From positions 94,359,343 to 94,423,342 of the forward strand of contig NC_068981.1 in the NCBI RefSeq assembly GCF_001194135.2: DNA of 64,000 nt, in the 5' to 3' direction. The DNA comes from Octopus bimaculoides (lineage: Eukaryota). Positions 8,021 to 60,800 of the stretch are shown in pieces. The position numbers and the translations under genes are program-made. Position 1 is the first letter of the stretch, and each line of letters begins with the position of its first letter. The notes under the pieces are model-generated. The model did not search any database. It saw only the letters and a list, made by a program, of their open reading frames with translations, and was not told where the DNA came from.

Positions 8021-11000
8021 GAGCGAGCACGTTGCAAAGAAATGAGATAGAAGAAAAGGGATACAGATGTAAGATGTTTAAAAAACATTATATCATGGTG
8101 AAATAAAATTAGTTTTCTGATTGAATTGTGTAGTTGAAATCTTCAATAATAAGCAATGTATGAAAACAACATTTTGATAGAATATATGTTAAAATTGGAA
8201 TTTTTTAAAGAATTTTTTAGACAGTGTAGACTTTAATAATTACTTTCTTTTAGTAAAAGTTACTTATAAGTAACTAATAAGCATCTTTTGATATTATAGT
8301 ATAGGTATATGCTGGAAAGCCATGTTTGCTACTAGTGCTGTTACACTAAAACTACTTGAAAATCTCAGATGATCATGAACAACAGGAAGAACAAAGTATG
8401 ATAAAAACCATGTTTGAACCTTATGAAATTCCTTGAACAGAACAAAGATGCCAGGACAGCTGCTGTATATAGACCTGTTTTATCAATGTCAATATATAAA
8501 TAAAGATGCAAAATTGGTGATGATAATGATGATGAAAAGGAGGAAAATATACCTATTATTGCTGACTATATAACTGTTCATTATTTCAGGGACAGATATG
8601 TTAGATCGCAAACCTAACAAGTTTGGAATTATATCTTGCAAATTTTTTACTTGATTTAAAATAATTTTCCTCATAAAATCTTCACCACTTTGGTTATTGA
8701 AGAAGCTATTGATCTGTAAGGCAAAATGAGAACAAAATTATAAACCAATATCAAACAGTTTTTATTCTATTTCTATAAAGAAATCATTAGAACACTAAGA
8801 TAATTTTGGTACACATTAAAAATAGAAAGAATGATGAATGAAAATCAGATGAATCAGAAGCTTTATGAAAAGATATACTGAATTAAATAAATTGTCTGGG
8901 AAATTTTACCTTTTTTTCCAAATATTGAGAGTCATACAATTTGACAAGGGCAGAGTAAAAGTCAAAATTGCTGCAAAATGTGGAATTGATAATACTCAGT
9001 ATTTCACTTGGTATGTTATTATATTTTGATGCTTCTTTGGTTAAAAACTTGTTAAATGTTCCATTGTAACAATGTTCCTGAAGTTTTGAGTCCATCATGA
9101 GAATCTTTGACAGCTAAAAGATACACAAGGAAAGTATATAGTAATGTTGGAATGAATAAATAACTTTAGATAAATATTTTGATTTGAGTAAATTAATTCT
9201 TGCTGTGAGAAAATTTTGTTGTGTCTAGGACATTACGCCAATATTTGAGAAAATTGTTTTACATCCATTTTTCCATTGTTGGAGCAAATGTTTTTATAGC
9301 TGTTTGTCTTTCCCATCACTAACCACTCGGCTATAATATCAGTGAAACTGAAACAAGGTAAGTAGTGTGCTTTGACCAGAGGTACAATACAACAGTTGAA
9401 GACTTATGGTCAGTAGTCTGTTGCTAATATTTGATTTAAGTTAAATATCAACCACATCAACATTACCATTGAGAAAACATGCAAATATTACAAGTACAAC
9501 CCACTTCCTTTCACTAGGTAATTAAAAAAGTTCCAAGTGATTGTCATGAAAATATTATAACCTAGTAGCTGATAGATAAATGGGCCATATTACATTGCCA
9601 ACATTATACTGCATTCTAAATCCTTAATTCTTCATAGATAATTACAAGAAAATTTAAATATGCTCTAAGAGCTGTATAATTCAGTGTTTTAACCCCAGAG
9701 GTAATGCATAAATGATTTCATTAGTTTCTAGCTATTGGTTCAAATTCTTCTATAATCCTTCTTGAAGAAGATAGTAAGCACCTATTCTATCATATTTCCT
9801 TTTTTCTAGCTAAGATGGCTAATGGAGTATTCAAATAGAAAAAAAAGAAGAAGCAATGATCTGATCTTACTGTATTAGGAAAATGATAATAATTTATAAC
9901 CAAAGAATGTTTAGTAATTTACAGTTATCAAAGATTATATTTCCCTAAAGATCATTTTTTGTTGATACCTAATGATAATAATATTTTTAATTCAGGTGAA
10001 GACCAAAGAATTACGCAAAATACTGATTTAAATTTTTGGCACAATGCCAGCAATTTCGGGGGATGGGGTAAGTTGATTACATTGACCCCAGTGCTCAACT
10101 AGTACTTATTTTACTGAGCCCGAAAGGATGAAAGGCAAAGTCAACTTAGACAGAATTTGAATTCAGAACATAAAAACAGGTGAAATGCTGATGAGCATTT
10201 TGCCTAACATGCTACCAATTTTGTCAGCTTGCCACCCTGGAATAACTCAAAATATCAGCAATACCATGCATGATGAAGAATTACATAATATGTTCGTAGG
10301 TCTGATGTTTTGTCTGTTAAAACACATTAACCACCTCACAACCACCAGAGGTACATTTTTCATAATTTGAGAAAATATTTTATTTTGTATCGTTGATATG
10401 GGTTCAAGGATATTTAAATAACTTGGGTATTAAATATTAAAGTTTGATTATGAAATGTAAAAATGCAAAAACAAAAAAAAAAATTACATTTCCTTGTAAT
10501 TAACTCTTTAGCATTTAAATTGGCAACATCCAGCCAAAAATTTCTATTTGTTTTATATTCAAACTGGCCAAATCCAGTCCCTCTCATCTATCCTATAATG
10601 TCATACCCAAAGTAAACAGTCACATTATTGGGGTTTCAAAGTTGCAGGATAATGCATGATTAATTCAAAACAAAGCACTAAATTTGACAGAGTAACCTGA
10701 ATGCTAAAGGTTAAACAGTATACAAGTGTGATTTTGGTAGAAGACTAAAGTTTTTAATTGTGAATTCCTTTTGTATTAAATATCTAGCATTAGTATTCAG
10801 AAGACAGTATGTTCTTTAAAATACATTAACTAAACTCCACAAATTAATAACTGTGATTTAACTGTGAATATGACTAGACTAATCAACTTGATGCTAACTA
10901 TATTGTATTGAGTTAAAATCTAGAAACATTTACTGTCTGTTAAGTAGCCTCTAATTATGACTATATGAAAATTATTCATTTTTGTAAAATAACATGGCTT

Positions 11001-13404
11001 AAATTATTCATGAAAAAGATGAAGAAATACTCACTACATCTGTATTATTTAATAATAATGCCACTGTTGTATCACTGATGTTATATGCTTTAGACAAAAG
11101 CATTGTGAAGTTTCTCATGTCTGTGTATTGAAATTGGTCTGTAAAAAAACAAAAAGGAAAAAAAAAATTATGATGTTAGTAAGGTTATGCTTATGAAGCT
11201 AGAAAACTGACCAAATGTTGAAACTATGTATCAAAAACATACATACATACATGCATACATGCATACATGCATACATGCATACATGCATACATACATACAG
11301 GGTGTTTGAATTAAATTGATGATTATTTTGTCACCTTTATCTCCAGGAGCAGCTTGATATATTGGTGAACAGTCAACAGCATTGGAAAGCATAATGATTA
11401 AAGTTGTAGTTAAGAAAAAGTTAGCCAACATGGAGGGCTGGAAATCATCTGAATATTGGAATAATATATCATAATGATTTTACCAGGGGATCAAAACGCT
11501 AATATCATGAATGTTGCTCATTGCTCTGTGAACACTGTAAAAGCTGTAAGATGGGACACGGACATCAGGAAAACCAAGTTCCCCTAAACAGTGATGGTCT
11601 TTGGGTATGTCTCCAGTAAGGGTGATGGCATGCACCCCACCCACATCTTTGAACAGGGCTGCTGGAAACTATAGTTAAACCCAGACTGGAGAAGATTGCA
11701 GCAGGAAGGTCATATGTGTAGCAGCAAGATTCGACTCCTCGCCATACCTCCAGAAAGAGTCAGAAGTGGTTGTTGTAGAATTTTTGCAACTTCTCCAGAC
11801 CTAATTTCTGGCCTCCTACTTCTCTTGAATTAGTAATCCTATGCATTACTATGTGTGGGCATGGTTGACAAAGACACCAACTGCTTTCCTACAACACCAA
11901 ACCCAAACTAGTGGCTAAGATCAAGGAGAAATTTGACGATCTTCCCAGGAACACAGTGAGGAATGCATGTGCCAGGTTCTAGAGCCTTCTTGAGGCTGTA
12001 GTGGAGGCTGAGGGTGGCTACTTTGAACTAACTGTTATCTCGTAGCCATAACAGATATTTTTTTGATTTTCTAAAAATACTTCTATTTTTGGGCAGGATA
12101 TTGTGTTTTTCTTTTTCCTTTTATGCAAACTGTCAAATTCAGCCCAAACACTCTCTATACACACAAAACACATACATACATACATACTTGAGTAATAGTT
12201 GATCTTATGTAAAAGTTGACCCCCTAATTTTGGCCAAAAAATTGGGAATTTTCCATAGACCCCATATAAAAGTCGACCCTAGTATTTCATGAACAGCAGG
12301 ACAACATTTTTGGGTCAAGGTACCGTATTATCCTGTACATAGAAATAACACTGTTACAAAATTGTGTGGCTACCTTTCCATAGCTTGTCCTATAGGTAGA
12401 ATACTTGGTGCTTATAATGGAATGCTTGGTGCTTATAGTAAAACACCATTTAATAGCAAGCACTACACATCTGTTGATGGATACTACATCATCATTACTA
12501 AAATGTATGCACAAGATATGCTGCAAGCCTGCATACATCTTCAAGCACAATCAACATATGCATCATACACTTGTTTAGATGGTGAGAAACATGTTTCACA
12601 GACAGCACTATTGGTGAGCACTGGCAAATGCCACTGTCTGGATTTATACAGTAGCATGACTTTGGTAATCCTAAAAACATTCAATTAATTGCTAGATCAG
12701 CGGTTCCCATGTAGCCTTTATATTTTCCTCATCTCCAAATACAATAAACACATGCGTCATATGTTCGTCTGCTTACATGGTGAGAAACATGTTTCACAGA
12801 CAGCACTCTCAGCAAACAACAGCAAAAATCACTGCATGAATTTGTATGGAGGCATAACTTCAGTAAGCCTAAAAACATTTAGTTAATTGCTAGATCAGTG
12901 GTTCCCAAACTTTTTTTTACTGCGGAATCCTTCAACATTATTTTTAAAAATGTGGAACCCCTGATGACTTTCAGGAAACCCTGGAGTTTTGCAGAACACA
13001 CTTTGGGAATCCTTGATCCAGATTATGGACATTTACTGGAAACTGCACACGAGAGTTATTTGGCCTTGTTTATGGGTTTTGTTATTTACCAGGACGTGTG
13101 TTTTGAATCAAAGAATTGGTAATATTACTGTAATTCAGTATGTCTTTGTTTTTATTCACTTAGAGATCAGTTAGGCTTCTGCTGCTGATATGGTACTTTG
13201 GATTCTAGCTTGAATTTCAGCCCCTCAAAAGTAGTATCCATGTAATAGTTGACCCCATAAATTTGACCATAAAAAATGGTCTAAAAAAGTCGACATTTAC
13301 ACACGTATAAACGGTGTATATATATATATATATATCTTCATATCTATGATTCTAGATCTCTCTCTCTTTTTCCCGCTTTCTCTTTATACATACATACATA
13401 CATG

Positions 13405-13459
<55 letters not shown>

Positions 13460-16400
13460 ATACATACAAACATTTGAATATCTGCAAGCATCTATATATC
13501 ATATATTGTGCATTGTTATATGTATGTGCTGTTTTCATGAATATATGACTATATAGTTATGAAGTGAATGAATATATATATATATATATATAAAACATAT
13601 GTAAGCAAATATGTAAGCATGCATGATTTCATGCACATGCATGTATGTATGAAGTATCCATCTATCTATCTATCTATTATATGTAAAATTTATTTTTTTA
13701 TTTGTATTTCTATGAGGAAAAGGTTAAGGAAATGGTTAACACCAGTTGTTGATTTCATTAGATTATTTGATAAAGCTAACAATCTTCAAAATCTCTTTGA
13801 GTAATTCCCTTGCATTTTAGGTAGTTAAACTTTAGAAAGTAAAAAAAACGATTATAAAGACATTGAAAGAAGTGGAATAAAAAGTAGGATTACAGAAGCC
13901 TTACTTTGTACTTTAGCCATCATGTCCATGAGATGCTTTTGAAGAATACTGCTATTTCCATTTGAGCTGAAAAATAGTGTTCAGAAAAGAATGTACATCT
14001 GATATAGAGTAATTTTCAATTAATAAAAAGAACTTTCTATTTGTTTTTTGTTTTAGAATTTTTTGTGCCACAAACTGATGTCTTTGCAGCAACATGCTTA
14101 GAACAAGCAGTTTATTTCAGTAAAACAAGATGTTTACTATGGACTTTATAGATTAACATATCTGTCGGCATATAAAATAGACAGTCACATAAGACACACT
14201 GCTACTTTACAAATACATTTTGTGTGGGGGAAAAAAAATTTCAGTATATTTCACCACATGTACTGAAAGATTATAAGTGGTTTTGTAGAGGAAAATATAT
14301 TATTCTGTATAAGTAAATAAAATACTGTGACAGTATACTGGAATAAAACATGAAACCATAAACTTATCTCATAAACTATGTTATACGAGAACTGCATTTA
14401 AACTTGGTTTTCTTTCAGGTTAACAATGTAGTTGTTTACATTTTGGTCAAGAGTTTTGTCACACAGGATGTAAAACTCACATTTCTAGCTATGATGTCTT
14501 GTGTTACTTTAATTGGCCAACATGCGAAATTCGTCAAGACAGATTTTCTACAACTGGGTGGTGATCCTGTTGCTAATCTTTACCAGCTTTCAAGCAAGGT
14601 CACATTTCCCACATGGTTAGATATATTTTTCGCAGAAGACTGGATACAAACAATGCTGCTCATATGAAGATGATGATGATGATGATGACACTCATTTACA
14701 ACCGTCACACGATATCTAAACAATAGTTGACACACACACGCACGCACACACGCATGCATGCATGCACACACACACATTTATATATGATGGGCTCCTTTCA
14801 GTTTCCGCCTACCAAATCCACACACAAGGCTATAGTAGAAGACACCTGCCCAAATTGCCATGCATTGGGACTGAACTCAAAATCACATGTTGGCAAGCAA
14901 CCTTCTTCACCACACTGTCATGGATGTACCAGTTTTTAATAGTTTAAATGCATAAATAAAAATGGAGGAATTTCTAAAACAATTAACTTACATTACAAAT
15001 TTTCCATCCCTTGTTAAGTTACTGAATGCACTCAATACTGTCTGCCATATTTTGAATGCTGGAGGTGGGAGGCTAATAGACTTATTGGTATATTGCTGTT
15101 CCCACAACAAACCAATTACTTTCTTAATGTAGTTGTCAGCACCAGAGACACTTATGTTTTTCTCTTTCAACAACTCTCTCTGTAAATTAAAGAATAGCAT
15201 TTTTATTACGTTGAAACATGTTTAAGAGTACTGTGTTTGACAAAATTCGTAGCAAAAATAAACTCACGTGAGACCTAGCTGTATGTGTTAAGAAATTGGA
15301 ACACTTCCTTGAGGTATTTTCTCCTCAAACTTATTATTGATACTCATAATGAGTGACATTACATTTTCTCTTCATTCATTCATTCATTCATTAATTCATT
15401 CATGCTAACAATTCTGCCAGCTCGCTGTCATTATTTCTATATATACTGATTACTTGTAAGTCTTGTGTCAAGTGCGTAAACTGCACTTCATTGAGGAGAT
15501 CTAATAAGACTGAAACATGCCTGTTCTTTCCCTGTTGGTTTGCAAGTCATTTTCCATTCCTATTTGTATCATTTTTATTTTTAAAAAAATCATTTAGGTG
15601 ATATTATTGTCATTATCTTCTTTAGTAGGTATATTTAGATTTGAAACACTCTTAGTGGGGATTTTTGTCCTCTAATAGAACACATAATTTCAGTTAATTG
15701 AAGTATTTCAACTTACTATATTACATATGTGAGACTCTACCTTATGCATATCTATATAAGAACTAATTAAAAGATACCACAGATAATTAAATTCTTATAT
15801 TTACATACAGGTATGAAGTAATCTAAAATTTTGTTGTGATGTATAATAACTGAACGAGTTACAATAGGTGTCAAGTTGAACTATTTGACACATGGAAATC
15901 AGTTGAAGTCTTACTGCTGCTACTGTATTGTGCCACTTTGTAATGTGCATAACTAGGCCTCTCTGATTCTTCTTGATTACTTTGTGGTTCTGCAGTTAGA
16001 AAGGGCTCTAGAAATAGAAAACTATTGCGTCTACAAAAACTATCAAACTCAAGCTATCATTGGAAGAAAAGGGCTAAAACTACAAAACAAATCAATCCCC
16101 ACCAACCAAAAAAAGAAAGAAAAAAGGTCATACAACTGCTATTTAATAAATAGTTGAAATAACATTTAAGACAGAAAGAAAACACATATAAAGACTGAAG
16201 TATTAACAAGGACACTTTTAAAAGGTTTTTTTTTATGAAGAATAAAAACACAATACAAGAAAATATTTCTTTTAATCTAGTGCAAAGCCATTCTTGCTGT
16301 TTCATTGACTTCAGCTCTTAACTGACTATATTGATACATGAAATTAATAAACCATTTCCTCTACTTATTGCAGAAAATGTACTTTGAAAGGCTGTTTTCT

Positions 16401-18161: not shown

Positions 18162-19243
18162 ACAGTCTTCCACACAGTTTTTATTAACCAATTCACTCAC
18201 AAAGCATTGGTCAACCTGGGGCCAAAATAGAAGACACTTGTTCAAGGTACCATGCTGTGGAACTGAACCTGAAACCACATGGCTGCAAATCAAGTTTCTT
18301 AACCACACAAACCATGTCTGTACCTTTTAAAATTTTGTCCCCATAAAGAGAGTAAAGACTCCTTTGGTCGTAAATGACTATGAGATTGCCCCTAGAAAGT
18401 TCCCCTCCAAGGCACAAGTTCAGGCAAGGTTGTTTATGGAAGACCAGCAGTTATGCATGCATACCAGCCTCCTCTCTCTGCGCCACCGATGTTATCCAAG
18501 GGAAAGATAAAGGCAGATACAGCTTGGCACCAGTGACATCACAACTTATTTCTGCAGATGAGTAAACTGGAGTAACATTAAATAAAGTGTCTTGCTCAAG
18601 AACACAACCTGGTCTAGAAATAGAAATCATTACCTCATGATTGTGAGCCCAATGCTCTAACCATTGAGCCATTTATACAGTAAGGGAACTGGACATTGTA
18701 ACATTCAAAATTTTTGCCAGGAACATTTACTGAGGAAGTTTTATGAAAGGTCTCTTATCTAGAAAGGGAAAAGAAACATTCTGCAAATTCTCTTACACTG
18801 AAATCTATCCCTTGCTGTTGCTGTAAATAAAATAGTTAAAGATGATAACTTGAGTAACTTACCAAGATAGTTAGTATACATTTCATTAATGCTTGTGGCA
18901 TTCATTGTTAAAAGCATTGTGAAAACACTTTGCACTGGAGATTGGCTATGGTTCGTGAAACTTGGTATTGAGTCATATATCTGAGAAATAATTCTGTAAA
19001 AGAAGAGACCAATACATTAAAGAGAGTATAGAGAAACCTTCAACTATTCTTCCATTCTTATCATCTCTGAAGCTATTATCAGAAACACACATACACACAT
19101 GGACACATACACTCTTGCATGCACACACACACACACACAGACACTCTTATTCTCAATCGCACACTTTCTAGCATTTTGTTTCTCCTTTTTTACTGTTTTT
19201 CATTTACTTATGACATGATAATTATGAAACTTTTAAAAAATAT

Positions 19244-19291
<48 letters not shown>

Positions 19292-22200
19292 TGTGTGGTA
19301 CATAGTCCACCATCTTAACTACATGACCATTAAAGCCTGTACTTTGAATAAAAACATTGCTAATAATATTAGGAACAGAATATAAACAATATTGAAAAGA
19401 TTTGATTTAGCACTATTCTAAGCTTTTTTTTTCCTACATGTAACTCAATGAAAACAAGAACCATTTACATACTTATATATGTTTTTATGCTCTTTTGTAT
19501 TTTCATCGTACAAAAAACTTTGTAAAATCAGATTTTTCAATAACTTGTTCAAAGGCTCCCAAAAGTTGGTCTGGTTAGATTTGGTCAAAACAGATAATTT
19601 CTCCCATACTGACTTAACAAGATTGAGGAGATTGGTGGGGTCCATGGCTTTTGCAGATGATGCATCACGCTTTTAAATAAGAGAAAAAAATGAAAAAAAA
19701 ATGAGTTATTTTGCTATTTAATTTTGATTGAAAACCAAACAACACAGTAAAATTGGAAAAAAAAAGTCTTTATATTTCTCAAAAATATTGTAGAATTACA
19801 ACAGACGGAGTGATAATGTAATGATTTTGGCTGTTGGAGATTCATCCTTTTGTATCCCATCACCAGTACTAAAGTGTATCCATGATGAAAATTTTAATTT
19901 TCATTGGCTCAAAATATCTAACAAAATGGGTATCTTCAGCGGTACAACTTATTGCAATATGCAATGAATGCACTGCATAATTGCATAACTTTAAAGTATT
20001 TGGTTACCATTCAACATTCAACTGAAATCCGTTTTTTGAGTTTAACCTGGAGAGGCAATATACTAGGCCCAGAAGTTGATAATTCATTGGTGGATCTATC
20101 TAAAAGAGATTAACTTATTGGCTATGATTGTTGCACTACTCTGGGATGAATCAATACATATTTATTAATCAAGAATACTAAAAGGACTGAATTATGGTTA
20201 CACATACATGTGCATGCATACACGCACATGCACACACACACACATGTGTATATATTATATAATATATATATTCTTTTTTCTATTACTTGTTTCAGTCATT
20301 TGAATGCAGCAATGCTGGAACAAATCAACCCTAGGACTTATTCTTTGTAAGTCTAGTACTTATTCTATCGGTCTCTTTTGCCAAACTGCTAATTTGCAGG
20401 GAGGTAAACACACCAACATTGGTTGTCAAATGATGGTGGGGGGACAAACACAGACACACAAATACATATATNNNNNNNNNNNNNNNNNNNNNNNNNNNNN
20501 NNNNNNNNNNNNNNNNNNNNNNNNNNNNNNNNNNNNNNNNNNNNNNNNNNNNNNNNNNNNNNNNNNNNNNNNNNNNNNNNNNNNNNNNNNNNNNNNNNNN
20601 NNNNNNNNNNNNNNNNNNNNNNNNNNNNNNNNNNNNNNNNNNNNNNNNNNAAGTTGACCTTGGCGGAATTTGAACTCAGAACGTAACAGCAGACGAAATA
20701 CCGCTAAGCATTTCGTCCGGCGTGCTAACGTTTCTGCCAGCTCACCGCCTTATCAAGTTTCTTATCACACAGTCACTTCTGCACATATATATTTATATAT
20801 GCATGTGTGTGTGTGTGCGTGCACATATATATACATACATACACACACATATATGTATTACGTAAGATATATATATTTATGTAGCTATATTTATATATAT
20901 ATTTATGTGTGTGTGTGTGTATATGTGTGCATCTGTGTGTCTCATATGAAGAGCGAAAATTTGTGCAATATTAAGTTTATAGTGAACTACAACTAATGAG
21001 TTTACAGTATGGTTTTAATTCCCATTTAGAAATTTTTCACATCATTCATGTTGCATATAATCATCAAAAATTCTTTCTTCTATAAGAAAAATGTTGATGG
21101 TTTTGCAGTTAGGAAGGTACTGATGTACAGTAATGAATTTTACGTGGATTGAATCTATGACCAGGTTTTAATTTTCCGCTGAAGCTGATTCACTTATGTA
21201 ACTGTGTCCTCAAGCAAACAAATATTTCAGTTTTCTATTTCCCTCATAATTCTCAACATATTTAAGAGATCAATGTAACAAAAGTTATTACCTTTTTTCG
21301 TACATTTGACAACTGGTTGAATTCCTGTTTTAGATTTAGAAAATTGATGGAACAAATATTCTGTAAGTAGGAATTGAGGTCAAAATTTGAATTTGGAACA
21401 GATGCCATTTTGATAGTTGCCATTGCTTGACAAATAGCTTTGGTTGGGTCTTGAGAGCCAGCTATGCTCATCAATGCTTTGGTAATCTAAAAAATCCAAA
21501 TGTGAAGAAAACATTGATTATGGTGTTACTATAGGATAGAATCAAAAAAATCTTATTCTACAAAGATAAACATTGTTGATTAAAATGACAGTCTACCAAC
21601 ATAGAAATAAATGTGTATACTACAAGAGTTATGTTTTTCCCAATAAAGATATTTAAGTCAATGTTTCAGTTCATCTAGTTTCAAATGGTGTAAATCAGTA
21701 GACTACTACTGCTAGTAGTAAGTATCTTAAATATAGGTAATAGCTTGCATTAAAAAAATTTACATATTTATTCCTGCTGTAAAGTAATTTTAGATTAAAA
21801 CTCAAGTCTTACAAAATAATATGTGGCTGGCAACTGAATTATAACCGATGTGAAATCACATCAGATCTTATGTAACCATATTTAAAATTAGTTTATATTA
21901 ATGTGGCTAAATAATCAACATTCAGTGTCCCATGATGGTCTTGCAAAACCTTGCAAAAGATTTAATTGTTAATAGTCTAACCTATACAACTATAACTAAA
22001 TGCATTCCATAAATTTGAGTTCTCTTAGTCATGAAACAATGTTTGTAATTTGGCTCTATTATGAAAACTGAGAGCGCATCAGTGCTCTAACATCACAAAC
22101 TACTATTAACTTCATTACACTCACACAAAGAAATTGAGTGACATCTCACTTTCAAGCTGAAATTTGTTCAGAAAAACTATGATCTTTTTGTCTGACGATG

Positions 22201-25200: not shown

Positions 25201-26159
25201 CACCTAACAAAAAGGAAATTTCTCATATATATATTTTCAAGCAAGATTGTGGTACACATTAGATAGTCTAACCAAATATCTCTTTGTCTGTATGAAATAG
25301 AACTTAACTCAGCAACTCCCAAAGGCTTTTGCCAAAGAATAGTGTAGTTGTGAAATATTTACATATGAAAGAATGCTGTTCATGAGGAAAACATATTGTA
25401 TATTCGTCTTCTCTCAGTATAAAGTAAATGTGATATTATTAATCGTATTATTAATAGTATTTTGTAAGAAAAATGACATTACCCATTAGTAAACGACTGC
25501 AGTTGTTGTTTCCACATATTTAAAAGAGAGACGATTTTTGATGAGTTCAGCAAATTTTCATTGTTTCCAAAGAGCCAAGTCAAAGGTTTTGAACTTAATT
25601 CCATCATCACCATTTGCATTTTCATAGCCTCAGACATTAATAAAGACAGGTCTAACATTGAACCTTCAGATTTGTCAGTTATCTGAAAAAACATTTAATA
25701 TATACTCATAAAATTTCAGTAATAATGTTCAATACCTTTATTTTTAATAATATGTAATGAAAAAGAGAGAACTGGTGGAAGAGTAAATACATTTAGTTGC
25801 AAGAATAGTCATCACTGCAGGTGAGTACACACACGCACACGCTAAAGATAAGCATCAGAGTAAAGATATGCTGTGGCTCTACTATTACAGAAAATGCTTA
25901 TAATAGAAAGGGAATTGTGGTACAATATGGACAGATTTCTGAATACCAGCGAACATTTATGCAGATATAACAATTTAAAAGATAAGCATATTACAATGGA
26001 TAATACTAAGTGGACTTTTCCATTTTCTCTCTCTCTTTTTTTTTTCTTGTGATGTAATCTTGGGACTGAAAATGTTTGCGGCTGAAGATAGCTTTAAACC
26101 GTCCTTTATATCAATTATATACTCATATAATGATACAATGACAGTTTGTGTTTAAAGCT

Positions 26160-32709: not shown

Positions 32710-32774
<65 letters not shown>

Positions 32775-33012
32775 GATGATGATGATGAAAATAATTATAA
32801 TGGTTTCAAGTTTTGGCACAAGACCAGCAATTTCAGGGAGGGGATAAGTCAATTACATTGACCCCAGGGCAGAACTGGTACTTATTTTATCGACCCTGAA
32901 AAGATGAAAGGCAAAGTCGACCTTGGTGGCATTTGAACTCAGAATGTAAAGGTAGACGAAATACTGCTAAGCATTTTGCCTGGTGTGCTCATAATAATGC
33001 CAGCTTGGCACC

Positions 33013-33075
<63 letters not shown>

Positions 33076-44800: not shown

Positions 44801-47800
44801 TAGACACTGCGGTGATAAATATGTTTGATATACACATTCTGATTGTTATTCTGAAAGATATACTGATTTGTTTGATGTTTCATGACTTATCTCAACTAAA
44901 ATATAAGAGCAATGATGATAAGGCATCGGGGATGATATTAACTTTTGTATTTCTGACTATTACTTGCACAATAAACATGAATAAGACCAGTGAGTCAGTG
45001 AGAAAATCTATTTATTTAAGGTTCTATAATTTTTGTGACAGTGTAATTATAGAAAACATGCAAAGATTGAATGAAAAAACTGTTGCTAATATCAAAAAAT
45101 GTTCACATACTTGGCAACTTTCTGCAGTAAATCTTTTTCTGTGATGTTGGTGAGCATTTCAGTAAATAAATCTATTGAGATGTTACTATTAACTCCCAAT
45201 ACAAATTTGGGAGGTTTCATGACCAATTCAGAAATCAAAACCTGTAATTCCATTTGAGAATTTGCATATGCTGTGTAGTCCACTGGTATCTGTTGGCCAT
45301 ATGAGTAATTTGCTAGCTGCATATACTGAAAAGATCAGATGAAATAAATAGATAAATAAATCATTGAAAACGACATTTGAATATATCTGTATGAGCATTG
45401 TATAACGGTATAAACAGATATCTATTATATACTGAGTACATTATTGATGAAATATTTAAAGTGTGGACGATAAAAAATCTAATTAGAAACAAATGAATGA
45501 CAAGGAAAATTGATATCAATTAATGTCTAATGTACTACAAATTTGTTTCTGCTAGGTATGGAATACAACAGCATTTCTGTTTTATTCTTATCACAGATGT
45601 GAAACTGAAGCACATATCTTACAATACTTCCTGAAGTAGTAAAATAGGAATCATGTATAATTGTAGAATAATGCATTTTTCTGATGCAGGAAAACAAATT
45701 TATTAGAAATTATATCTAGAGAGCCAACCTTCCTCAAGAAAATCCTTAAATAAGTGGCCTATTCTGGATTTGTTGAGAAACATGTTTTGTGATGTAGTAT
45801 ATTGTCAGTGGAAATTGCTCATGTAGTGCATTCAACACCTTTCATTTTTGTAATTCTTTAATGCAGAAGTAGTAAGATCATTAAAAAAAGCAGCATATAA
45901 GGAGAGCAAAGCAGTAGAAATGTGGCAGATTTGGGAATTCTCCTCTCAACCATTAGTCTCCAGATTAAATTAGTATATGATTACAATAACTTAAATTACT
46001 GTCAGAAATTTCTGACATTGATATTTACTTCTTGAGTATGTATATACAATATAAATTTTACCATTACAAACACAACATAATTAAAAGCAAAAAAACATCT
46101 TGAAAATGATTTCTCTCATTTTATCAAGGACATTGTGAATAGATCTTCAAGAATACATTGTAATGAGTTATTGACTTTATGGTATTTAGAGTAGTTTCAG
46201 GTTCACATTCTCAGGAAGAAAATTAAAGGGACATAGATATATTATCTAACTTATATAAGAGCTATGCAGAAAGTAAACGAGATATTTTTAGAAATGAATT
46301 TCTTTGAACTTTATCTAATGAAAGAACACTAGTTCACTGAGTGAATTTAACCAGTGTAGGAATGGATGCATGTTGAAACAAAATATTTTGTTGTTAATAA
46401 AAGGGAATGTAACTGGTGTTTTATTAATAAAAAAGTTACTATATTTCTATAAGATAATACAGTAATATACTTGATTAATGATGAAATAGATGTGGTAGAT
46501 AACAAAGCTAAAGAATATTTAAAATATTACCATTTCCATAAGACTGCTGAAGCCAGGAAGTGTTTTATTTACTTGTTGTAAGAGTTTTGCATAATCAGTT
46601 GCTGCTATCATTTGACATGCAGATTGTATATTCCTTGGATCATTGATGGATGGGAACAACTTTTGGAAAAGAGTTGCATTCTCACATATCTTTACCCATA
46701 AAGTTTCATCTTCAATAAATGGTAGAATCTGATGCAATAAAAAACAGAGGAATATGAAAGAATTTATAACATAGTGTAGACTTAAATTTTGTTTACTCCC
46801 TGTAAACGATAATAATGCTCAAGTTGTCTTCTGACAACATACTACTTGACAATCAACAGTGGTTTGTTTATCTTCCTGTAATTATGCAGTTCAACAAAAG
46901 AAACGAGTGGAATAACTGCCAGAATTAAAGAAAAAAAAACACTACTGAGGTTGATTTGTTTGCCAAAACACTTTGACACAGTGCTCCAACATGACCTCAG
47001 TCCATTCACTCATAATGTTATAACTGAAAAATAACAGTTAAAGAAAGAAAAGTTAATATGTATGTATCATTTGTGTGGAAAATATCTACTTACTCTTTCT
47101 GGATTGGTAAATATGTCTATAGCAGATGCAACCAATTTTGAAGCAACTTCAGGTGTAATTTCTACCAGTCCAAGCAATTTCCTTAATTCTGGAAACTGTA
47201 TGTATTGATACATATTGAATGTATCTAATCCTGGAAGAAAAGAAGGAATAACATAAGAGTTCTGAAAGAAGAAACAACGTTTCAATAAGAGCAGATTTAT
47301 AACAGCAGATGGTGATATCTGGTGAAATATTATTCAACTGAATAATACATCTGGATGGTTTTAATGAAGCAGGTATATCAGAGAATCAAATTTAATAAAC
47401 ACAGTCATTTTAAATATCTTAATTGAGTTGATTAGTGAGTGCACAAATATCACTCCTTTGGTCTTCATTTGTACGTTTCATGATCTGAGATATGAAAATA
47501 TCTGTATTCCATATGCAATATTGTTAATCTGTTTGGCAAAAATGCTCTGTATTTGTGTTTATAGTTTTCACTTTTGTAAGCTATTCTGTAATTGGTGATA
47601 GATGGGGGTTATGCAATAACTTGCAGAATAAGTTGATGAGATGATTTGTTTATAGAGTTGAAATGTTTGTGTTGTATATTAGCTCATTCCATTAGTGAAA
47701 TTGACATTACCTGTACAGGTGCATGGCGGGAAACATGTCAGACATCAAAGTGATTAAAGAGCAATGTGGAATGAAGTGTTTTGCTCAAGAACAACACTAT

Positions 47801-48789
47801 ATCACCAATCTGGGAATGAAAACCTTGACCTCCTGATAGTAAGAGCAGCACACTAACCACTAGGACAATACAATCTGTACAATAGAAGTAGTCAGACTGT
47901 CTGTGGAATTTTTGATTTTCTCAGACTGTTGCATGTTTAAAAGTTTCAAATAGATTAAAGAACAATGAATAATGCTCAAGAATACATACCTACAATACGT
48001 TTTAGATTGGGAATTAAAAATTCCAAAACCTTCTGTTCTATATAGACTTTCATATTTTGATCTGGAATTCCTGTTATATTCAATGTAGCCAAGAATTGCA
48101 TTACATAACCATTGATTATCTGAGGACTGAAAAAGAGGAAATGCATTGAGAATTAAATTGATGAATATTCTAGAATTGAAGTATTTCATTTAAAAAATAA
48201 GCAATAAAGATGTATGAAGTTGTGAAAATCAGTTAGAATAAGTAAAGCTAAATTTCCTTGATATAGTGTTTCTGATTTGTATTGTAAACAACGTACAGGA
48301 TGTATTAGAGAATATTTGTTCTGTTCTGAACTCAGTTTTAGAGTAATGGAATAAAACATTTTGTGGATGATATTATAAATGATACATATATGTATATACG
48401 CTGTCTGGGGGCATGGTGGTTATAGATGAGGGCTATATATGTGTGTGTGAATATATATCATCATCATCATCATCATCATCGTTTAACGTCCGCTTTCCAT
48501 GCTAGCATGGGTTGGACGATTTGACTGAGGACTGGTGAAACCGGATGGCAACACCAGGCTCCAGTCTGATTTGGCAGAGTTTCTACAGCTGGATGCCCTT
48601 CCTAACGCCAACCNNNNNNNNNNNNNNNNNNNNNNNNNNNNNNNNNNNNNNNNNNNNNNNNNNNNNNNNNNNNNNNNNNNNNNNNNNNNNNNNNNNNNNN
48701 NNNNNNNNNNNNNNNNNNNNNNNNNNNNNNNNNNNNNNNNNNNNNNNNNNNNNNNNNNNNNNNNNNNNNNNNNNNNNNNNNNNNNNNNN

Positions 48790-48829: not shown

Positions 48830-51800
48830 CAAATGTAGGCATGTGCATATGTATGGATGTATGTATGTACATCATCTTACCATTAGTTCCACAAGAAATA
48901 TGAATATTGGAAGAGAGTTTTACTGGGTAAATATATATAACAATTTCTCATTTTCAGAAGTGTGTTTATGGGAAAATGCAAAGAAAGAATAAAGAAAATG
49001 CTGAAAATATTTTAAAAAATACTTTTACATACTTGGCAAGTTTTTGCAGTAAATCCTGTGTGTTGTTGGTGAGCATTTCAGTAAATAAATCTATTGAGAA
49101 GTTATGATTAACTCCCCATACAAATTTGGGAGGATTCATGACCAATTCAGAAATCAAAACCTGTAATTTCACTTGAGTATTTGCATATGTTGTGTAGTTT
49201 ACTGATAGCTGTTGACCATATGAGTAAGTTGCTAGCTGCATATACTGAAAAGATCAGATGAAAGTGATAGATAAATAAATCATTGAAAATGATATTTGAA
49301 TATATCTGTATGAGCATTGTATAATGGTATAAACAGGTATCTATTATATACTGAGTAAGTTATTGATGAAATATTTAAAGTGTGGACGATTAAAAATCTA
49401 ACTAGAAACTAATAAATGATGAGGAAATCTGATATTAATCCATGACTTATATACACTATTTTCTTTTCTGCTAAGTATGGAATACAACAGCAAACTTATA
49501 TTTCGTCTGTATTCTAATGATTAAAAACTGAGTAATATCGAATTTATCTCTGGGAAATATATGACCTACAAAAGTTTAAGAGGTGTTTTTATAATTGGAC
49601 TTCATCAAATCATGTCAGATGAAGGAGAAAAAAATTTCAGTAAGTTAATTTAGTCAATATGGGATTGGAAACATGTTGAGATTTTGTTGATACTAGAAAA
49701 ACATGACAACTGTTTTATTAGCAAATTATTTAAAATGTTTTTACAAAACATTGAAGTAATACACAGTAAGCATTATTAATGATAAAACAGGTGCAAGAGA
49801 CAGAAAACAAAGAATATTTTAAAAATTACCATTTCCAAAAGACTGCTGAAACCAGGAATTGTTTCATTTACTTGTTGTAAGAGTTTTTTAAAATCAATTG
49901 CTGTTATCACTTGACATGCAGATTGTATACTGCTGTTATCTTTAAAGTATGGGAATAGGTTTTTGAAAACAGTTGAATTGTAACATATATTTTCCCATAA
50001 AGTTTCATCATGAATAAATGGTAGAAGCTGATGGAATACAAAGTGAAGAAACATGAAAGAATTTATAACATATTTTAGATTAAAGTTTTAGTTACTTTCT
50101 GTAATCATTTACAATGGTCAAATTATCTTCACATATAGATCAAATGGTTGTAGACATGGCTGTGTAGTTAAAGAGTTTAGTTGACAACCATATTGCTTCA
50201 TGTTTTATTCCTTTATTCCATAATCATTATGAATGTTCTTCAACTGAGTTTTTCTTAACCTCTTGAGATCTATACTTCAATAACAACTCAACCCTGTTAC
50301 CAGAATTGCGCACACATACACACACATATACATATGTACAGATGTTTATGTGTCTTCATATTGTGTGTATATATATATGTACAGTGTTTCCATGTATCTT
50401 CATATTGTCACCTTGTTACCAGAAGCAGAGACAATGTTTACGTTTCTATCAAGTAAGGCATCATGTCACTCTTCAGTTTTGTCATTTGTGAAAACCAAGG
50501 GAATAAGCAATTATCTTATTCAAAAACAAGCAAGTTTTTGCCCGCAGGGAGGTCATCAAACCATAAAATACTGCCTCAGAGACTCTCATCCAACCCATGC
50601 CAGCATGGAAAAAGTGAACATAAAAATACTGCTGTTGATGTTGATGAAACGTTTATATAATGTTTGTAACTCCTATATGTTCAATGTATAGCCAATAAGA
50701 TGTAGATTTTTTTAATGTTACAGAAAATATATTACATATATTTGTGCTTTATTTTTCAATTTTTGTATAAACTAAATTTTCCAGGGACAATAAGTAGTGT
50801 TACATAAATTTTTCAAAATTGATTAAAAGTTTTCAATCACCATAATTCATTTACTAGTTACTAATAACATGAATGTCTGTCCACTAATTTTTTTCAAAAT
50901 TTGAAGTAAAAAAAAATAAAACCTAAACATTCATTGCTGTATATTTCTGAATAATGATAGTAACAACAAGAAAATAATTGTTTATTGACTCCATATTTCT
51001 GTGTAAGATATCTACTTACTCTTTGCGGGTTGATAAGTATGTTCAGACCAGACTCAAACAATGCTGATGCAGTATCTGGTGAAATTTGAACCAATACAAA
51101 AAGATTCTTTAATTCTACTGATTGTATGTATTGAGACACGTTGAATGTATTTGTTTCTGAAAGAAAGCAAGAATAATGTAAGCATTCTAAAAAAACTACT
51201 GTCTTTTATAATATTTATAATATAAAATGATGGAAACTGGTGTTTATCAGTTGATTAAAACATCTGTACAGTTTTAAGGAAGAAGACATATGAAAGAAAA
51301 TATTTAATAATAGAAAGTAATAGTAATTTATTTAAGACCTTTATTTTAAGTATGTCAAACATATGGATGATTAACTGCACAAAATTTCCATTGCTGACCT
51401 CACTTACTTTGTTTGTGTTGTGAGATAAGGAAAGCAACTGTTGTTTTTAAGTTGACTCTTTATAGTATAATAATTTATCTGCTAGATGAAGTTTGTCTAA
51501 ATTTGACTGCTGTGTTTATGGTTAAGGCATATGAAAAATACAATAGCAGTAGTCAAAATTATAGTAGAAAATTATCTCTAGTTTATGAGTCTTTAGAAAA
51601 ATAAAGTCGATTAAAGAACAAAAAATACTGCTTGTCAATACATACCTACAATAGGATTTAGATTGGCAATTAAAAATTCCATAACCTTCTGTTCTATATA
51701 GACTTGCATGTCCATTTGTGATGGAAGTCCCATTGATTTACTCAGTATAGCAAAGAATTGCATTACATAACTACCCATTACCTGAGGACTGAAAAAGAGA

Positions 51801-54800: not shown

Positions 54801-57800
54801 GTAGTTCATCTATGGAGATAGTGAGGTACAAGACTCTTTCAGGAATATGTGGTGAGTGTCATTGTACAGTTAAAGAACATGAGTTTGATATTGTACATTA
54901 AAAGATATTCTTAAAGTGTCTGTTCATACATATAGTTGATATCTAGCATGAGTTCTGTGTGTGGAATATTATAAAGGAATAAAAACAAAGAGACTACAAC
55001 CTTTATATGAGAGTGGTTGGTTGGCACTCTGTCGGTTTTGATGACAAGGGTTCCAGTTGATCCCATCAACGGAACAGCTTGCTCGAGAAATTAATGTGCA
55101 AGTGGCTGAGCACTCCACAGACACATGTACCCTTAATGTAGTTTTCAGGGAGATTCAGCGTGACACAGAGTGTGACAAGGCTGGCCCTTTGAAATACAGG
55201 TACAACAGAAACAGGAAGAGTGAGAGAAAGTTGCGGTGAAAGAGTACAGCAGGGTTCGCCACCATCCTCTGCTGGAGCCTTGTGGAACTTTAGGTGTTTT
55301 TGCTCAATAAACACTCACAATGCCTGGTCTGGGAATCGAAACCGTGATCCTACGACCGCGAGTCCGCTGCCCTAACCCCTGGGCCATTGTGCCTCCACTA
55401 TATGAGAGTAGCTAGATATGACAGCAAGTATTGCACTGAAGGGAGAGAGTGGAAGGAAGCATTACTAAACCTTAAAATATAGCAGAGTTGATAGTGTAAG
55501 AGTTGGAGATGCAGCAATGGTGTGAATTGATGAGAAGCTTCCAATTCAAGAATTGTAAAACGAATGGAAATCATAGATGATAATGAATATGGTCAATCTT
55601 GAAATAAGTTCTGATAATTGTTTTAAATGCCAACTACTACAAAATCTTAATGACGGTATGTGGGGAAATCTTAGGTTTAGATAAAAGTTATAAATTTTTA
55701 ACATACTTGGCAAGTTTCGCAAGTAAGTCTTCTCCTGTTATGTTGATAAAATATTTGTTAAAGGAATCCAATGTCAAATTTGTGTTATCATTCCATATGA
55801 ATTTTGGAGGCTGCATCACCAAATAACCAATTAATGATTCCAGTTTCTTTCTAGACATCTCATATGCTGTGTAGTTTACTGAAAGTTTTTCACTCAATGT
55901 ACCATTTTCAAAAAGTTTAAACTGAAAATATTAGTTTATAAATATATAAGGTAACATTCTTATCATTAATAGCAAGAAAAAATTATAAACAAAGTTTCAT
56001 AGCACTTAACTGGGTAATTGAAATATTATATTTCAATTGTTTATATTTCTGTAGCAAAAGAATTATACTAGAATCAGATCAATAAGAAAATATTTGAAAT
56101 ACATTCTATTTTCATCTAGGAATCTTCAAATCAGAGTAGCTTAGTCTTAAGATACAAAATAGCATTAATCTATCTGTCTGTCTGTCTGTCTGTTTGTCTA
56201 TCTAGGTCGTCCCTCAGGACACCCCAAGACTGTTTCCACATGTTTTCCCCATTCATCTCAATCTTCCATAATGGTCCTCAACTCCTGTATCCCTTCCATA
56301 CCAGGATCATGTTGAGACAAAGTGGGTATTGTAAAAAAGGAAAACAAAAGGGGTTTCACATTATATACCGTGTATCTATAAAACATTGAAGTTATACATT
56401 TGATTAATGATGAAATAAAGGTGGTGAGCTGAAAGAATCATTAACACACTAGATAAACTGCTTAAGAGCATCTTTTCCAGTTTTAAGTTCTGAGTTCAAA
56501 TTCCACCTAGGCCAACTTTGCCTTTCAACCTTTCAGAATTAATAAAATAAGTACTGTCAAGTATCTGGGTTGATGTAATCAGCTGAGCCTCCCTAAAATT
56601 TCAAGCCTTGTGCCTATAGTAGAAAGGATTAATGGTGAAATAAATTTAACAGGTAGCATAGAGAAGAATAATTAAAAGTTCACAAAATCTCACCATTTCC
56701 CAAAGACTGCTGAAACCAGGAAGTGTCTCCTCTAATTCTTGTAAGAGGTTTTCAAAGTTAACTGGTCCTATCAGGTCACATGCTGTTTGTATAGTGCTTT
56801 TATCTTTAAAGTATGGGAACAGTTTTTGGAAAAGAGTCATATTGTAACACATCTTTTCCCATAGAGTCTCATCTTCAATAAATGGTAGAAACTGTGGAGA
56901 AAATATACAACAGATATATTATAATCTAAATAATTTCAATATAAGTTAAAGATGTATCGATATAATAGTGCAGCTGCACTTATAAACTTAGTGAATTTTG
57001 ATTGTCTTTAAGTAATATCGTGTTTGGTTGTCTTTTCTATATTATCTTTTTAAACCACTACTTTGCTTAACACATTAAAATATTAGTATATGAAACAAGT
57101 AACTGAAACACTTTTTAATATGAATGCTAATTTTATGCCAAGGCTCATAGTAAAAGACCTAGGGTATCATTTTTGCAGGTGTTGTGGATGAGTGATAAAT
57201 CTGGAATACAAAGTAAATAGTATACCTGCCTAAACAAAAACAAACCAAAAACAACAATTTGTTACTGAACAGTTAGCTGGAGCCTTTGAAGTTTAGATCT
57301 TAAAAAGTTTAGGTCTCAAAAATACAATGATCAATATACTTGATAACATACTGTATTGCAGAGCATTCTAACTCCTCTTTGTGTTCATGAATCCCCACAC
57401 CCTCATTCTAAAAGAAGTATACATAATAACAGTTTCTAAGAAATATGTTGATAGCATTTCATTATCTATTTAATGTTGTCATCAAATTGGCAAATACTCA
57501 AGTAAAAAAAAATCTGAGAGATCAATTCAGATAAATTCTATCAAAAGTATGAATTGATTTTTTAACATGTTCTTTCTCAACATTTCCCATGGACATTATC
57601 ATGTTGAAGTCTTATCATTCTTATATTGAAATAAACTATCTGGTTTTGATAGTTTATTTCTTGTAACTATGTTGAATGTAGAACAGTGGTAAAAATGAAA
57701 TAGGAATAAAAATAATAACATTTGATTTCATTTCTTTTTGTTAACAGACCAGTTTTATGGTGATAATTCTAGAAATTTTGATAGTTTATTCTTGATTTTG

Positions 57801-60800
57801 TTATCTATTATTGTGGAAAGAAATATAGTCGTTTGTCTTGGATTCATTAAGAGTATTATTAATTTTACTTATTGGAAATGAAAATCAGATCATTTTCTTT
57901 CTTTTACACTACTTACCCTCTCAGGATTTATAAACATGTCTAAAGCAGTTGCAGCAAACAATGAAGAAATTTCTGGTGTAATTTCAACCTGCCCAAGAAG
58001 CTTCCTGAGTTCTGTAGAATTTATATACTCAAACATATTGAATGAACCAGATGCTGAAACAGAGTGTATTGAATATTTTTGATTTTAAAAATGTAACTGC
58101 ACAATATTCTTATATGGAAACAAAGGAATATGAGCAAGAGTTAGTATCTGTGGTACATAATTTTGAAGTTGAACATAATTACTGACTACCAAAATATGAT
58201 CAAATATATATAAAAAAATATATTTTAATGATATTGAATGAGAAGTACATTCAAAACTCAGTTTCTTTTCACTTTTATTTTAAGCTAATTTTGCATATCA
58301 ACTTCGCCTTCCTGGCATTTGTGCCACTGGCACATGAAAAGACATTCGAGCAAGATTGTTCGCTGCCTTCCTGGCACTTGTGTCAGTGGCACGTGAAAAG
58401 ACATTTGATCAAGATCGTTGCCAGTGCCGATGGACTGGCCCCTATGCAGGTGACACATAAAATACACCATTTCTAGTGTGGCCATCACCAGTACCGCCTG
58501 ACTGGCCCTCGTGCCGGTGGCACGTAAAACACCCACTACACTCTTGGAGTGGTTGGCGTTAGGAAGGGCATCCAGCTGTAGAAACTCTGCCAAATCAGAT
58601 TGGAGCCCGGTGTCGCCTCCTGGTCCACCAGTCCTCAGTCAAATCATCCAACCCATGCTAGCATGGAAAGCGGACATTAAACGACGATGATGATGATGAT
58701 GATTGCCAGTTATCCACAAAGAATCAAAAGCTGATGAGGTCAATGCATGCTTATAAAAATCGTACCTTTGGAGACATGTGAAAAACTTCATCTAACAAGC
58801 AACATCAGAGTACTTCTACAAGGCGATCATACGAGCTTTTTAAGGTTGGTAATGAAATATTAACATTCAACTCAAATTACATGCAGTCAAATGATACTTT
58901 CTCTTAGGGATCTTATGGATAAAGTATTTCCTAATTTATATGTCAATTTCACTGATGTAAACTGGCAATGTGAAAGAGTTATACTAGCTCCAACTAATGA
59001 AATGTTTTATAAACTCAGTCATGAATTTCTTCAAAAGTTAACAGATATATTAGAAATGATTTTTCAATCAATTGACAACAGTTGATCAAGATCAGGTTGT
59101 TCAATACCCTGTTGAATTTCTGAACACATTTAAACCCACTGGGATGCCACCACATAACTTGACACTAAAACTGGGCGCTCCCATTATGTTGCTTAGGAAT
59201 CTTGACTCATCTCACCTGTTGCTTGCTCACATGTTGGAAGCAGCAACAATTTATTCATTTTGACACAAACAGAAAATTACACAATGTATATTATTTGCCC
59301 TGAGGTGCTTCAACATTGACAGATTTTCAGTTTGAAATTCTATTATCATTACAATTTGGATATTTTTCAATAAAATATAGATATTTTGAAATAATTATGA
59401 AAATATATCTTTATATTTGTTTACTAAACTGAATAAGAACAGCAGTAACTCAGGCAATGCTGGGCCATTCAGGTAGTATATATATATATATATANNNNNN
59501 NNNNNNNNNNNNNNNNNNNNNNNNNNNNNNNNNNNNNNNNNNNNNNNNNNNNNNNNNNNNNNNNNNNNNNNNNNNNNNNNNNNNNNNNNNNNNNNNNNNN
59601 NNNNNNNNNNNNNNNNNNNNNNNNNNNNNNNNNNNNNNNNNNNNNNNNNNNNNNNNNNNNNNNNNNNNNNNNNNNNNNNNNNNNNNNNNNNNNNNNNNNN
59701 NNNNNNNNNNNNNNNNNNNNNNNNNNNNNNNNNNNNNNNNNNNNNNNNNNNNNNNNNNNNNNNNNNNNNNNNNNNNNNNNNNNNNNNNNNNNNNNNNNNN
59801 NNNNNNNNNNNNNNNNNNNNNNNNNNNNNNNNNNNNNNNNNNNNNNNNNNNNNNNNNNNTATATATATATATGTATGTATATATATATATATATACATAC
59901 ATGTGATATATATTTACACATGCACATACATGTATGAAATTATATATATGTATAATTTCAAAGGAATTCAGGAAATACTTACCAGAAATAACTTCTAGAT
60001 TTGCATTGATAAACTCAATGAATTTTTGTTCCACAAGAATATTGGTATTTTGCATTTCTAATCCAGTCATGTCACCAATCATTTCAATAATTTTCATTAT
60101 ATTTATCTCCAGTTTAGTACTAAAACAAAAGAAAAGATAAAAAGGGAATATATATTTTATATTAATTTATAGGAGACATATATTTTGTTCAGAAATGTTT
60201 TTTTGTACACTGACAAGTTTTACTTTAAGAGAAAGAATAAGCATTCCTCACAGGTATTTCTAATGTAGCCAAATATCATCGTGAACATTTCTGCTCTAAA
60301 TAATCTAGAATTCATTAAAGGTTATTAAATCTTGAAGGTGATTATTACCTGAAGTAGTTGTATCATACGGTTTATCTTTTATGTTATAAAGAATGCGTAT
60401 AAGTTAAGTTTATCTTTAAGCTAGAGATGAAAAAAAAAAGAAATTCTTTCGGCAGCATATGACCAATCATATAACTTTGACTATAAACATATTTTTCCAA
60501 CTTATTGTCATTACAATTCTTGTTTTAACATGTTTAACTCATAATTTTGAGCCTTCAATGCAACATGTCAGCACATTTCAATGTTGTATTATCTTGTCAG
60601 AGTCACATCTTTAAATCTAGCCTCACAACTTTCTCTATATCTTTTGTTGACCTTCATACGTTTTTTTACTACTAGACTTTCTTGAAAGCTCTAAGGTAAA
60701 ATTTCATCAGTGATATTGTATTCATAGAGTATATAAAGAGTGATTTAAAAATTGGTCACTTTTTCAACATATACAACATAACATTATCTAAGAAAGTGTT

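Follow-up and report, generated by a model that had tools for sequence, protein, structure and literature searches.

A tandem array of four-exon modules related to the ABCA4 ectodomain lid in a probable giant ABCA-type transporter gene of Octopus bimaculoides

The minus strand of a 64,000-nucleotide stretch of the Octopus bimaculoides genome (NCBI RefSeq assembly GCF_001194135.2, contig NC_068981.1, positions 94,359,343 to 94,423,342; hereafter the window) carries a tandem array of about ten copies of a four-exon module, which quite probably belongs to a giant gene for an ABCA-type lipid transporter. The 64-kb window is AT-rich (GC about 31%), with abundant microsatellites and eight runs of N. 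An initial annotation had marked a repeat at 8910-58053, described from two peptides of its ninth module. This repeat is real: both peptides have exact matches on the minus strand (11118-11035 and 9113-8910), with usable splice sites, and the recurrence lies far above chance. The array moreover reaches past 58053, with exon D of module 1 (M1) at 60119-59983 and exon B of the preceding module (M0) at 62548-62316.

Minus-strand stop-free stretches yielded three and later four recurring peptide types, and jackhmmer was seeded with single exon copies. Searches from single exons returned four to six copies of each exon type (D, C, A and B) at E-values (E) of 1e-17 to 1e-43. The exons follow one another in the order D-C-A-B with descending coordinates, and the splice phases are identical in each copy. 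Since these phases run 2/1, 1/0, 0/0 and 0/2 through D, C, A and B, the four-exon cassette is an in-frame unit, of about 687 nt or 229 aa. Modules M1 to M7 are robust and possess all four exons, with the partial M0 upstream and the degenerate M8 and M9 downstream. M8 is fragmentary, with only a D-type exon at 18993-18863 and, as a candidate, a B-type exon at 15179-14992; its exons C and A, as well as exon D of M9, were looked for in the window and not found. M9, the exemplar of the initial annotation, has the right phases and the Cys pair but scores only 7-9 bits against the module profile; tblastn with its peptides found no further copies in the window, and the module on its own showed no significant similarity to anything. 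Module 9 has diverged too far to be used as a seed, and modules 1-4 were therefore used to define the repeat. A tblastx self-comparison of the window was swamped by interspersed repeats and microsatellites. The four exon types are as follows.

Exon D, typically about 137 nt: one base finishes a codon at its start; ends after one codon base.
Exon C, typically about 137 nt: two bases finish a codon at its start; ends in phase 0.
Exon A, typically about 198 nt: begins and ends in phase 0.
Exon B, typically about 215 nt: begins in phase 0; ends after two codon bases.

The individual exons are listed below in the direction of the gene, with the evidence for each and, where aligned, the matching residues of P0001, a protein of the octopod Argonauta hians that is taken up further on; a slash marks a splice boundary.

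62316..62548, minus: M0 exon B, last exon of a module starting outside the window; jackhmmer E 3.5e-20; acceptor phase 0; donor AAG/GTAAGA after 2 bases; P0001 1228-1297.
59983..60119, minus: M1 exon D; jackhmmer and splice phases; donor CTG/GTAAGT, phase 1.
57917..58053, minus: M1 exon C; jackhmmer and splicing; its first base is the end coordinate (58053) of the initially annotated repeat; acceptor tttcag/CA; donor AGG/GTAAGT.
56694..56891, minus: M1 exon A; jackhmmer and splice sites; holds the Cys pair.
55707..55921, minus: M1 exon B; jackhmmer and splice sites.
51646..51788, minus: M2 exon D; jackhmmer and splice sites.
51020..51156, minus: M2 exon C; jackhmmer and splice sites.
49830..50027, minus: M2 exon A; jackhmmer and splice sites.
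49033..49244, minus: M2 exon B; jackhmmer and splice sites.
47990..48126, minus: M3 exon D; jackhmmer and splice sites.
47094..47230, minus: M3 exon C; jackhmmer and splice sites.
46531..46728, minus: M3 exon A; jackhmmer and splice sites.
45111..45325, minus: M3 exon B; jackhmmer and splice sites.
44545..44684, minus: M4 exon D; jackhmmer and splice sites.
40806..40933, minus: M4 exon C; jackhmmer and splice sites.
40056..40253, minus: M4 exon A; jackhmmer and splice sites.
38198..38400, minus: M4 exon B; jackhmmer and splice sites; P0001 3719-3782.
35482..35630, minus: M5 exon D; sole phase-correct candidate in its interval; P0001 3788-3838.
34428..34567, minus: M5 exon C; recurring peptide type and splice sites.
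32471..32686, minus: M5 exon A; jackhmmer; P0001 3886-3953.
31637..31851, minus: M5 exon B; splice phases; P0001 3952-4036.
30856..31013, minus: M6 exon D; splice sites; P0001 4028-4080; near-identical open reading frame (ORF) P0009 in a related genome.
28825..28961, minus: M6 exon C; jackhmmer and splice sites; P0001 4078-4127; ORF P0004.
27096..27305, minus: M6 exon A; jackhmmer and splice sites; P0001 4121-4194.
25483..25682, minus: M6 exon B; jackhmmer and splice sites; P0001 4203-4260.
23699..23841, minus: M7 exon D; acceptor at 23841, 23838 or 23802; P0001 4258-4307.
22471..22598, minus: M7 exon C; phases.
21292..21486, minus: M7 exon A; ends in NVRKK, which spliced to the next exon gives a conserved RxKR; 61.5% identity to P0001.
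19473..19669, minus: M7 exon B; phases.
18863..18993, minus: M8 D-type exon (tentative); right phases, GTAAGT donor; by eye, without an alignment score, its peptide resembles the last residues of P0001, IISILFDTTSNQSRLPVKDFF.
14992..15179, minus: M8 B-type exon candidate (tentative); right phases, GTAAGT donor; non-significant profile score.
11035..11138, minus: M9 exon C (the first of the two initially annotated peptides, E3); right phases; donor GTA/GTGAGT; non-significant profile score.
8910..9113, minus: M9 exon A (the second, E4); Cys pair; profile score 7.3 bits, in the expected segment.
8553..8713, minus: M9 exon B (tentative); profile score 9.1 bits, in the expected segment.

Spliced together, the 29 exons from M0-B to M7-B form a stop-free sequence of 5054 nt encoding 1684 aa, so that the window alone contributes at least 1684 aa of array. 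The product contains 14 Cys, two per module, and 38 NxS/T sequons, a composition which, judged from the translated sequence, fits an extracellular or luminal glycoprotein. Its residues 234-1669 align with P0001 3031-4466 in a single high-scoring segment pair (46.5% identity, 1436 residues per side, 1446 columns). Three assembly gaps lie within the spliced region, between M2 exon B and M3 exon D (48614-48789), between M4 exons A and B (38655-38848) and between M7 exons A and B (20472-20650), and each gap is flanked by exons that follow directly on one another in the cycle and have compatible phases; as the single segment pair is of equal length in both proteins, the three gaps are intronic and no exon was lost at any of them. 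A further gap (17686-17787) falls at the expected place of M8 exons C and A. At the M7 A/B splice junction (21292-21304 to 19669, minus) the product reads NVRKKR/DASS, a furin-type RxKR motif, and an RxKR motif stands at the same place in Argonauta (NVRRKRESE) and in Acanthosepion (GRQKRDVSS); this may be a candidate proprotein-convertase cleavage site within the ectodomain.

We scanned 1.84 billion representative proteins using HMMER with a profile of five modules from the window and recovered ten proteins, the closest of which to the window are octopod.

P0001, Argonauta hians: 4510 aa, 23 matched stretches.
P0010, Argonauta hians, upstream neighbour of P0001: 1115 aa, one stretch, E 2.3e-4.
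P0002, Acanthosepion pharaonis: 1170 aa, E 2.7e-79.
P0003, Owenia fusiformis (annelid): 3359 aa, E 5e-23.
P0005, Sinanodonta woodiana (bivalve): 4286 aa, E 4.5e-8.
P0008, Potamilus streckersoni (bivalve): 1522 aa, E 3.7e-6.
P0006, Argopecten irradians (bivalve): 2878 aa, E 2.4e-7.
P0007, Logan transcript from SRR26439020: 6516 aa, E 2.5e-7.
P0004 and P0009, a close relative of the window's species: 89 and 80 aa, single-exon ORFs.

Two of these relatives place the module within a recognisable transporter. P0005 contains two ABC_tran, two ABC2_membrane_3 and one R1_ABCA1 domain, with the first nucleotide-binding domain (NBD1) starting at residue 3058, and P0007, encoded on one uninterrupted 20.5-kb transcript contig, shows the same ABCA core from about residue 4485; both carry the same module and possess both NBDs. 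Residues 2253-3274 of P0005 align with ABCA4 124-1166, so its extra 2,200 residues sit between the first transmembrane segment (TM1) and the position of ABCA4 residue 124, which places the array at the site of the ECD1 lid. In P0005, whose canonical first extracellular domain (ECD1) begins at 2253, and in P0007, ECD1 has thus grown to thousands of residues, inserted between TM1 and the canonical core. An iterated profile resolved the extra region into tandem modules at a spacing of about 230 aa, with 24 in P0001, 18 in P0007, 14 in P0003 and 10 each in P0005 and P0006. The uncharacterised giants of Sinanodonta woodiana, Potamilus streckersoni, Argopecten irradians, Owenia fusiformis and Acanthosepion pharaonis belong to the same module family and share this spacing; they differ from the octopod proteins in that their modules, 5-18 in number, are far more diverged from one another, and no repeat is annotated in them. 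The array had initially been taken for a lineage-specific one, a view that does not hold in its narrow sense, as cephalopods, bivalves and an annelid all have it.

The Argonauta ortholog (GAB1599091.1/GAB1599092.1; Ahia01_000186300/Ahia01_000186400) carries the same module and is annotated as two partial hypothetical proteins with no assigned function. The last 1436 residues before the end of GAB1599091.1 are those collinear with the window model, and the annotated protein ends where M8 of the window starts. P0010 and P0001 share a strand, P0010 being 7.4 kb upstream, and the Argonauta gene spans 116 kb. This upstream fragment starts MKSLHQFFTLFKKHILLRRRQPSLLLLEILWPILVFAIVAV...RAMPSSG...CNLNNRC, which we take to be a canonical ABCA N-terminus with TM1, and over residues 139-331 the fragment matches the P0007 N-terminus (E 2e-21). 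The two short ORFs P0004 and P0009 reproduce M6 exons C and D (window 28961-28732 and 31045-30845), intron read-through included; by eye, about 3 of 45 residues differ in the exon part and about 6 of 31 in the read-through part.

When 63 diverse modules are aligned, two columns are invariant, both of them Cys. Searched against 177,635 PDB sequences, the profile built from this alignment had a sole match, to residues 129-263 of ABCA4 ECD1 (E 4.3e-5), in which the invariant Cys pair aligns with C205 and C230; the four ABCA4 entries alone fell below E 0.1, followed by designed helical proteins at E 0.14 to 2.2. Because the 63-module alignment included array-terminal units that are directly alignable to ABCA4, the profile was rebuilt from internal modules alone. 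The ABCA4 match persisted at 26.4 bits (E 5.7e-5, Z = 177,635), and the internal-module profile recovered the first unit of P0010 and the last units of P0005, P0006 and P0007 at E 1e-6 to 1e-8. When a profile was made from the ABCA4-like units at the array ends, it did not single out module 9 as a terminal unit. ABCA1 and ABCA7 were not matched by the 63-module profile in PDB, nor were they found by phmmer with ABCA4's own lid; as the ABCA4 lid itself fails to find ABCA1, the missing ABCA1 match is uninformative. The module thus shares with the ABCA subfamily, through a transitive link discussed below, sequence homology to the ECD1 lid segment that holds the Cys pair.

These results bear directly on the initial annotation, which had read the module as a multiplied segment of an ABCA extracellular domain and had named, beforehand, the lack of a significant profile or structural match to ABCA ECD1 among the outcomes that would refute it. 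On the profile side the match found is significant (ABCA4, E ~5e-5), and together with the relatives that possess an ABCA core and the ABCA N-terminus in Argonauta it supports that reading. The counterpart had been sought in the lipid tunnel of ECD1; the homologous part is instead the apical lid of ECD1 (ABCA4 about 138-271). This lid is a helical, lumen-exposed insertion whose ends, R140 and N269, are described as two connectors to the tunnel, and it is the longest region left unmodelled in cryo-electron microscopy structures (bioRxiv 10.64898/2026.06.25.734683). AlphaFold2 (AF2) modelled a window module with the 63-sequence alignment at a predicted local distance difference test (pLDDT) of 91.2 and a predicted template modelling score (pTM) of 0.78, giving about eleven helices, with a short strand close to either end, whereas with five sequences only the model was unusable (pLDDT 59). 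The two-connector ends of the ABCA4 lid fit a domain that can be duplicated in tandem, and the modelled module likewise has strands near both ends. ABCA4 and ABCA1 have one lid copy, compared with about ten modules in the window and about 24 in the Argonauta protein; the module is also longer, about 229 aa as against the roughly 135 aa aligned in ABCA4, and sequence identity between the two is very low.

Within the array, M2 (51788-49033) and M3 (48126-45111) are the youngest and closest pair, with a synonymous divergence (dS) of 0.18, exon identities of 72-89% and introns that are partly alignable at 66-88%. Their ratio of nonsynonymous to synonymous divergence (dN/dS) is about 1.1, compared with 0.5-0.7 in other pairs, values from which we infer weak sequence constraint except on the frame, the splice sites and the Cys pair. 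For M2 and M3 this comparison suggests that they were recently duplicated or underwent gene conversion, under selection that is relaxed or diversifying. The collinearity of M1-M7 with an Argonauta stretch of equal length suggests that no module was gained or lost since the two lineages split. Downstream of M7, a short partial copy of the candidate exon at 15161-15078 lies at 14017-13934 (minus) with an in-frame stop, and looks like a decayed duplicate exon.

In the mechanism that we propose, tandem duplication of the four-exon cassette would have built the enlarged first extracellular or luminal domain, each cassette encoding a self-contained domain of about eleven helices with several N-glycosylation sequons and a presumed disulfide formed by the Cys pair. 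To the left of position 1 the gene would continue into the canonical ECD1, the first transmembrane domain (TMD1), NBD1 and the second half of the transporter. The lid copies would form a long glycosylated chain atop the transporter ectodomain, and this chain could extend or multiply a lipid-handling or partner-binding surface, a function put forward because lipid contacts have been proposed for the lids of ABCA1 and ABCA4 and because mouse ABCA13 requires its long N-terminal region.

We consider it quite likely that the window is an internal part of a giant octopod minus-strand gene for an ABCA-type (ABCA13-like) lipid transporter, and that the module is a duplicated ECD1 lid domain. Several results weigh against this, beginning with those on the transporter core. 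In the window, a motif scan and tblastn with the core of the relatives found no transmembrane domain, Walker A or ABC signature exons, and tblastn with the canonical ECD1 and core of the relatives found nothing in 1-8552 or 62549-64000. No gene is annotated in the 10 kb downstream of P0001, the cephalopod models P0001, P0010, P0002 and P0011 are all partial and without ABC domains, and no cephalopod protein joining the array to NBDs was seen among the models found. The lack of core exons in the window, the partial models and the lack of an annotated downstream gene would all suit a stand-alone secreted or single-pass lid-repeat protein, derived from an ABCA gene by fission or core loss and no transporter itself. 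We regard such a protein as unlikely, since a full ABCA core is present in every complete repeat-bearing relative, once on the single 20.5-kb transcript, since the Argonauta array begins with what we take to be an ABCA TM1, and since gene predictors routinely split giant genes; the window gene, furthermore, exceeds both window ends, and its last recognised exon keeps an open splice donor.

The tie to ABCA4 also meets adverse results. A single module matched no Pfam family and no PDB sequence, and the five-module profile gave only chance matches in PDB, such as glutathione synthetase at E 0.06, and no ABCA protein in PDB or Pfam. A cephalopod-only profile had no match to ABCA4, so the link from the octopod module to ABCA4 is a transitive one, through the bivalve and annelid modules. 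In a Foldseek comparison, which the initial annotation had proposed as a check, the module model matched no structure in PDB, ABCA or other (best E 0.87), probably because ABCA4 138-271 is absent from solved structures. That empty search, the modest score of the ABCA4 match (about 26 bits, E ~5e-5) and the lack of ABCA1 or ABCA7 might indicate an unrelated helical repeat whose likeness to ABCA4 arose by chance from helical, Cys-containing sequence. This we find very improbable, because the repeat occurs within bona fide ABCA proteins, precisely in the interval from TM1 to the residues aligned with ABCA4 124 onward, because the internal-module profile finds the first and last units of those arrays, which can be aligned directly to the lid region of ABCA, and because both invariant Cys align; the lack of ABCA1 counts for little when ABCA4's lid misses it too. 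Hardly credible, finally, is an array of decaying duplicated exons in a pseudogene region without expression. The dN/dS of about 1.1 between M2 and M3, itself a point against the favoured reading, agrees with decay, as do the degenerate M8 and M9 and the stop-containing pseudo-exon at 14017-13934, but 29 consecutive exons, together 5 kb of coding sequence in an AT-rich genome, all keep an open frame with canonical splice sites and phases, the Cys pair is present in every module, and collinearity with Argonauta extends over the array at 46.5% amino-acid identity.

The introns of the array hold several other elements. In the M1 D-C intron, beside a gap at 59495-59859, ORF fragments on the plus strand (about 58864-59300) match the Pif1 helicase 2B domain (PF21530, E 1.6e-12) and are probably the remnant of an inserted Helitron-like element or PIF1 helicase. 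An interspersed family is present in five intronic copies (54401-54100, 20471-20314, 17419-17043, 16971-16628 and 14930-14690) with 55-75% translated identity; two of them abut the gaps at 20472 and 17686 and may be the cause of the assembly breaks. A second interspersed family occurs in array introns at 63165-62950, 62085-61962, 56592-56418 and 52092-51884. Long trinucleotide repeats at about 32690-32794 and 32990-33110 give poly-Leu when translated from the minus strand and poly-Asn from the plus strand; the former stands directly upstream of M5 exon A and in frame with it, but ahead of the acceptor.

Returning to the transporter gene, its nearest counterpart in layout is ABCA13, the least understood ABC transporter, which is implicated in psychiatric disorders. 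ABCA13 is the largest ABC protein (human 5058 aa, mouse 5034 aa), an ABCA member with an abnormally large ECD1 between TM1 and the remainder. The invertebrate P0005 (4286 aa) and P0007 (6516 aa) have the same overall layout; PDB itself has no ABCA13 or ABCA12 entry. Descriptions of the vertebrate region recognise no domains in it, and a single 4.8-kb exon encodes part of it, whereas here the region consists of regular four-exon, lid-like cassettes. The long N-terminal region of ABCA13 is needed for function (PMC7948424, PMC13161189): in the mouse it is required for vesicular localisation and cholesterol internalisation, and it is reported to resemble no known protein or domain (PMC7948424). 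According to a 2026 review, the structure of ABCA13 is still unexplored (PMC13161189). In the searchable literature, we found no description of a giant ABCA ectodomain as a tandem array of lids. The gene family itself is already known, and orthologs are already in databases as hypothetical partial proteins.

For annotation, the present reading would mean that several cephalopod, bivalve and annelid 'hypothetical partial proteins' are pieces of one transporter gene. It is further possible, and we propose it tentatively, that the giant ectodomains of the ABCA13 class in general, the vertebrate long N-terminal region included, are tandemly duplicated ECD1 lids, that the octopod gene preserves the unit of duplication, and that the lid is an autonomous, duplicable lipid- or partner-binding domain. 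The lid of ABCA4 (138-271) carries many Stargardt variants of uncertain significance. If giant ectodomains are lid arrays, their natural copies would provide a deep alignment defining the conserved core and disulfide of the lid, and the deep module alignment already raises the AF2 model from pLDDT 59 to 91; the lid would be shown to be an independent folding unit, and the giant region would become tractable module by module. The significance of the array would rise if the same modules occur in vertebrate ABCA13, and an origin from duplicated lids may explain how ABCA13-type transporters gained their huge ectodomain.

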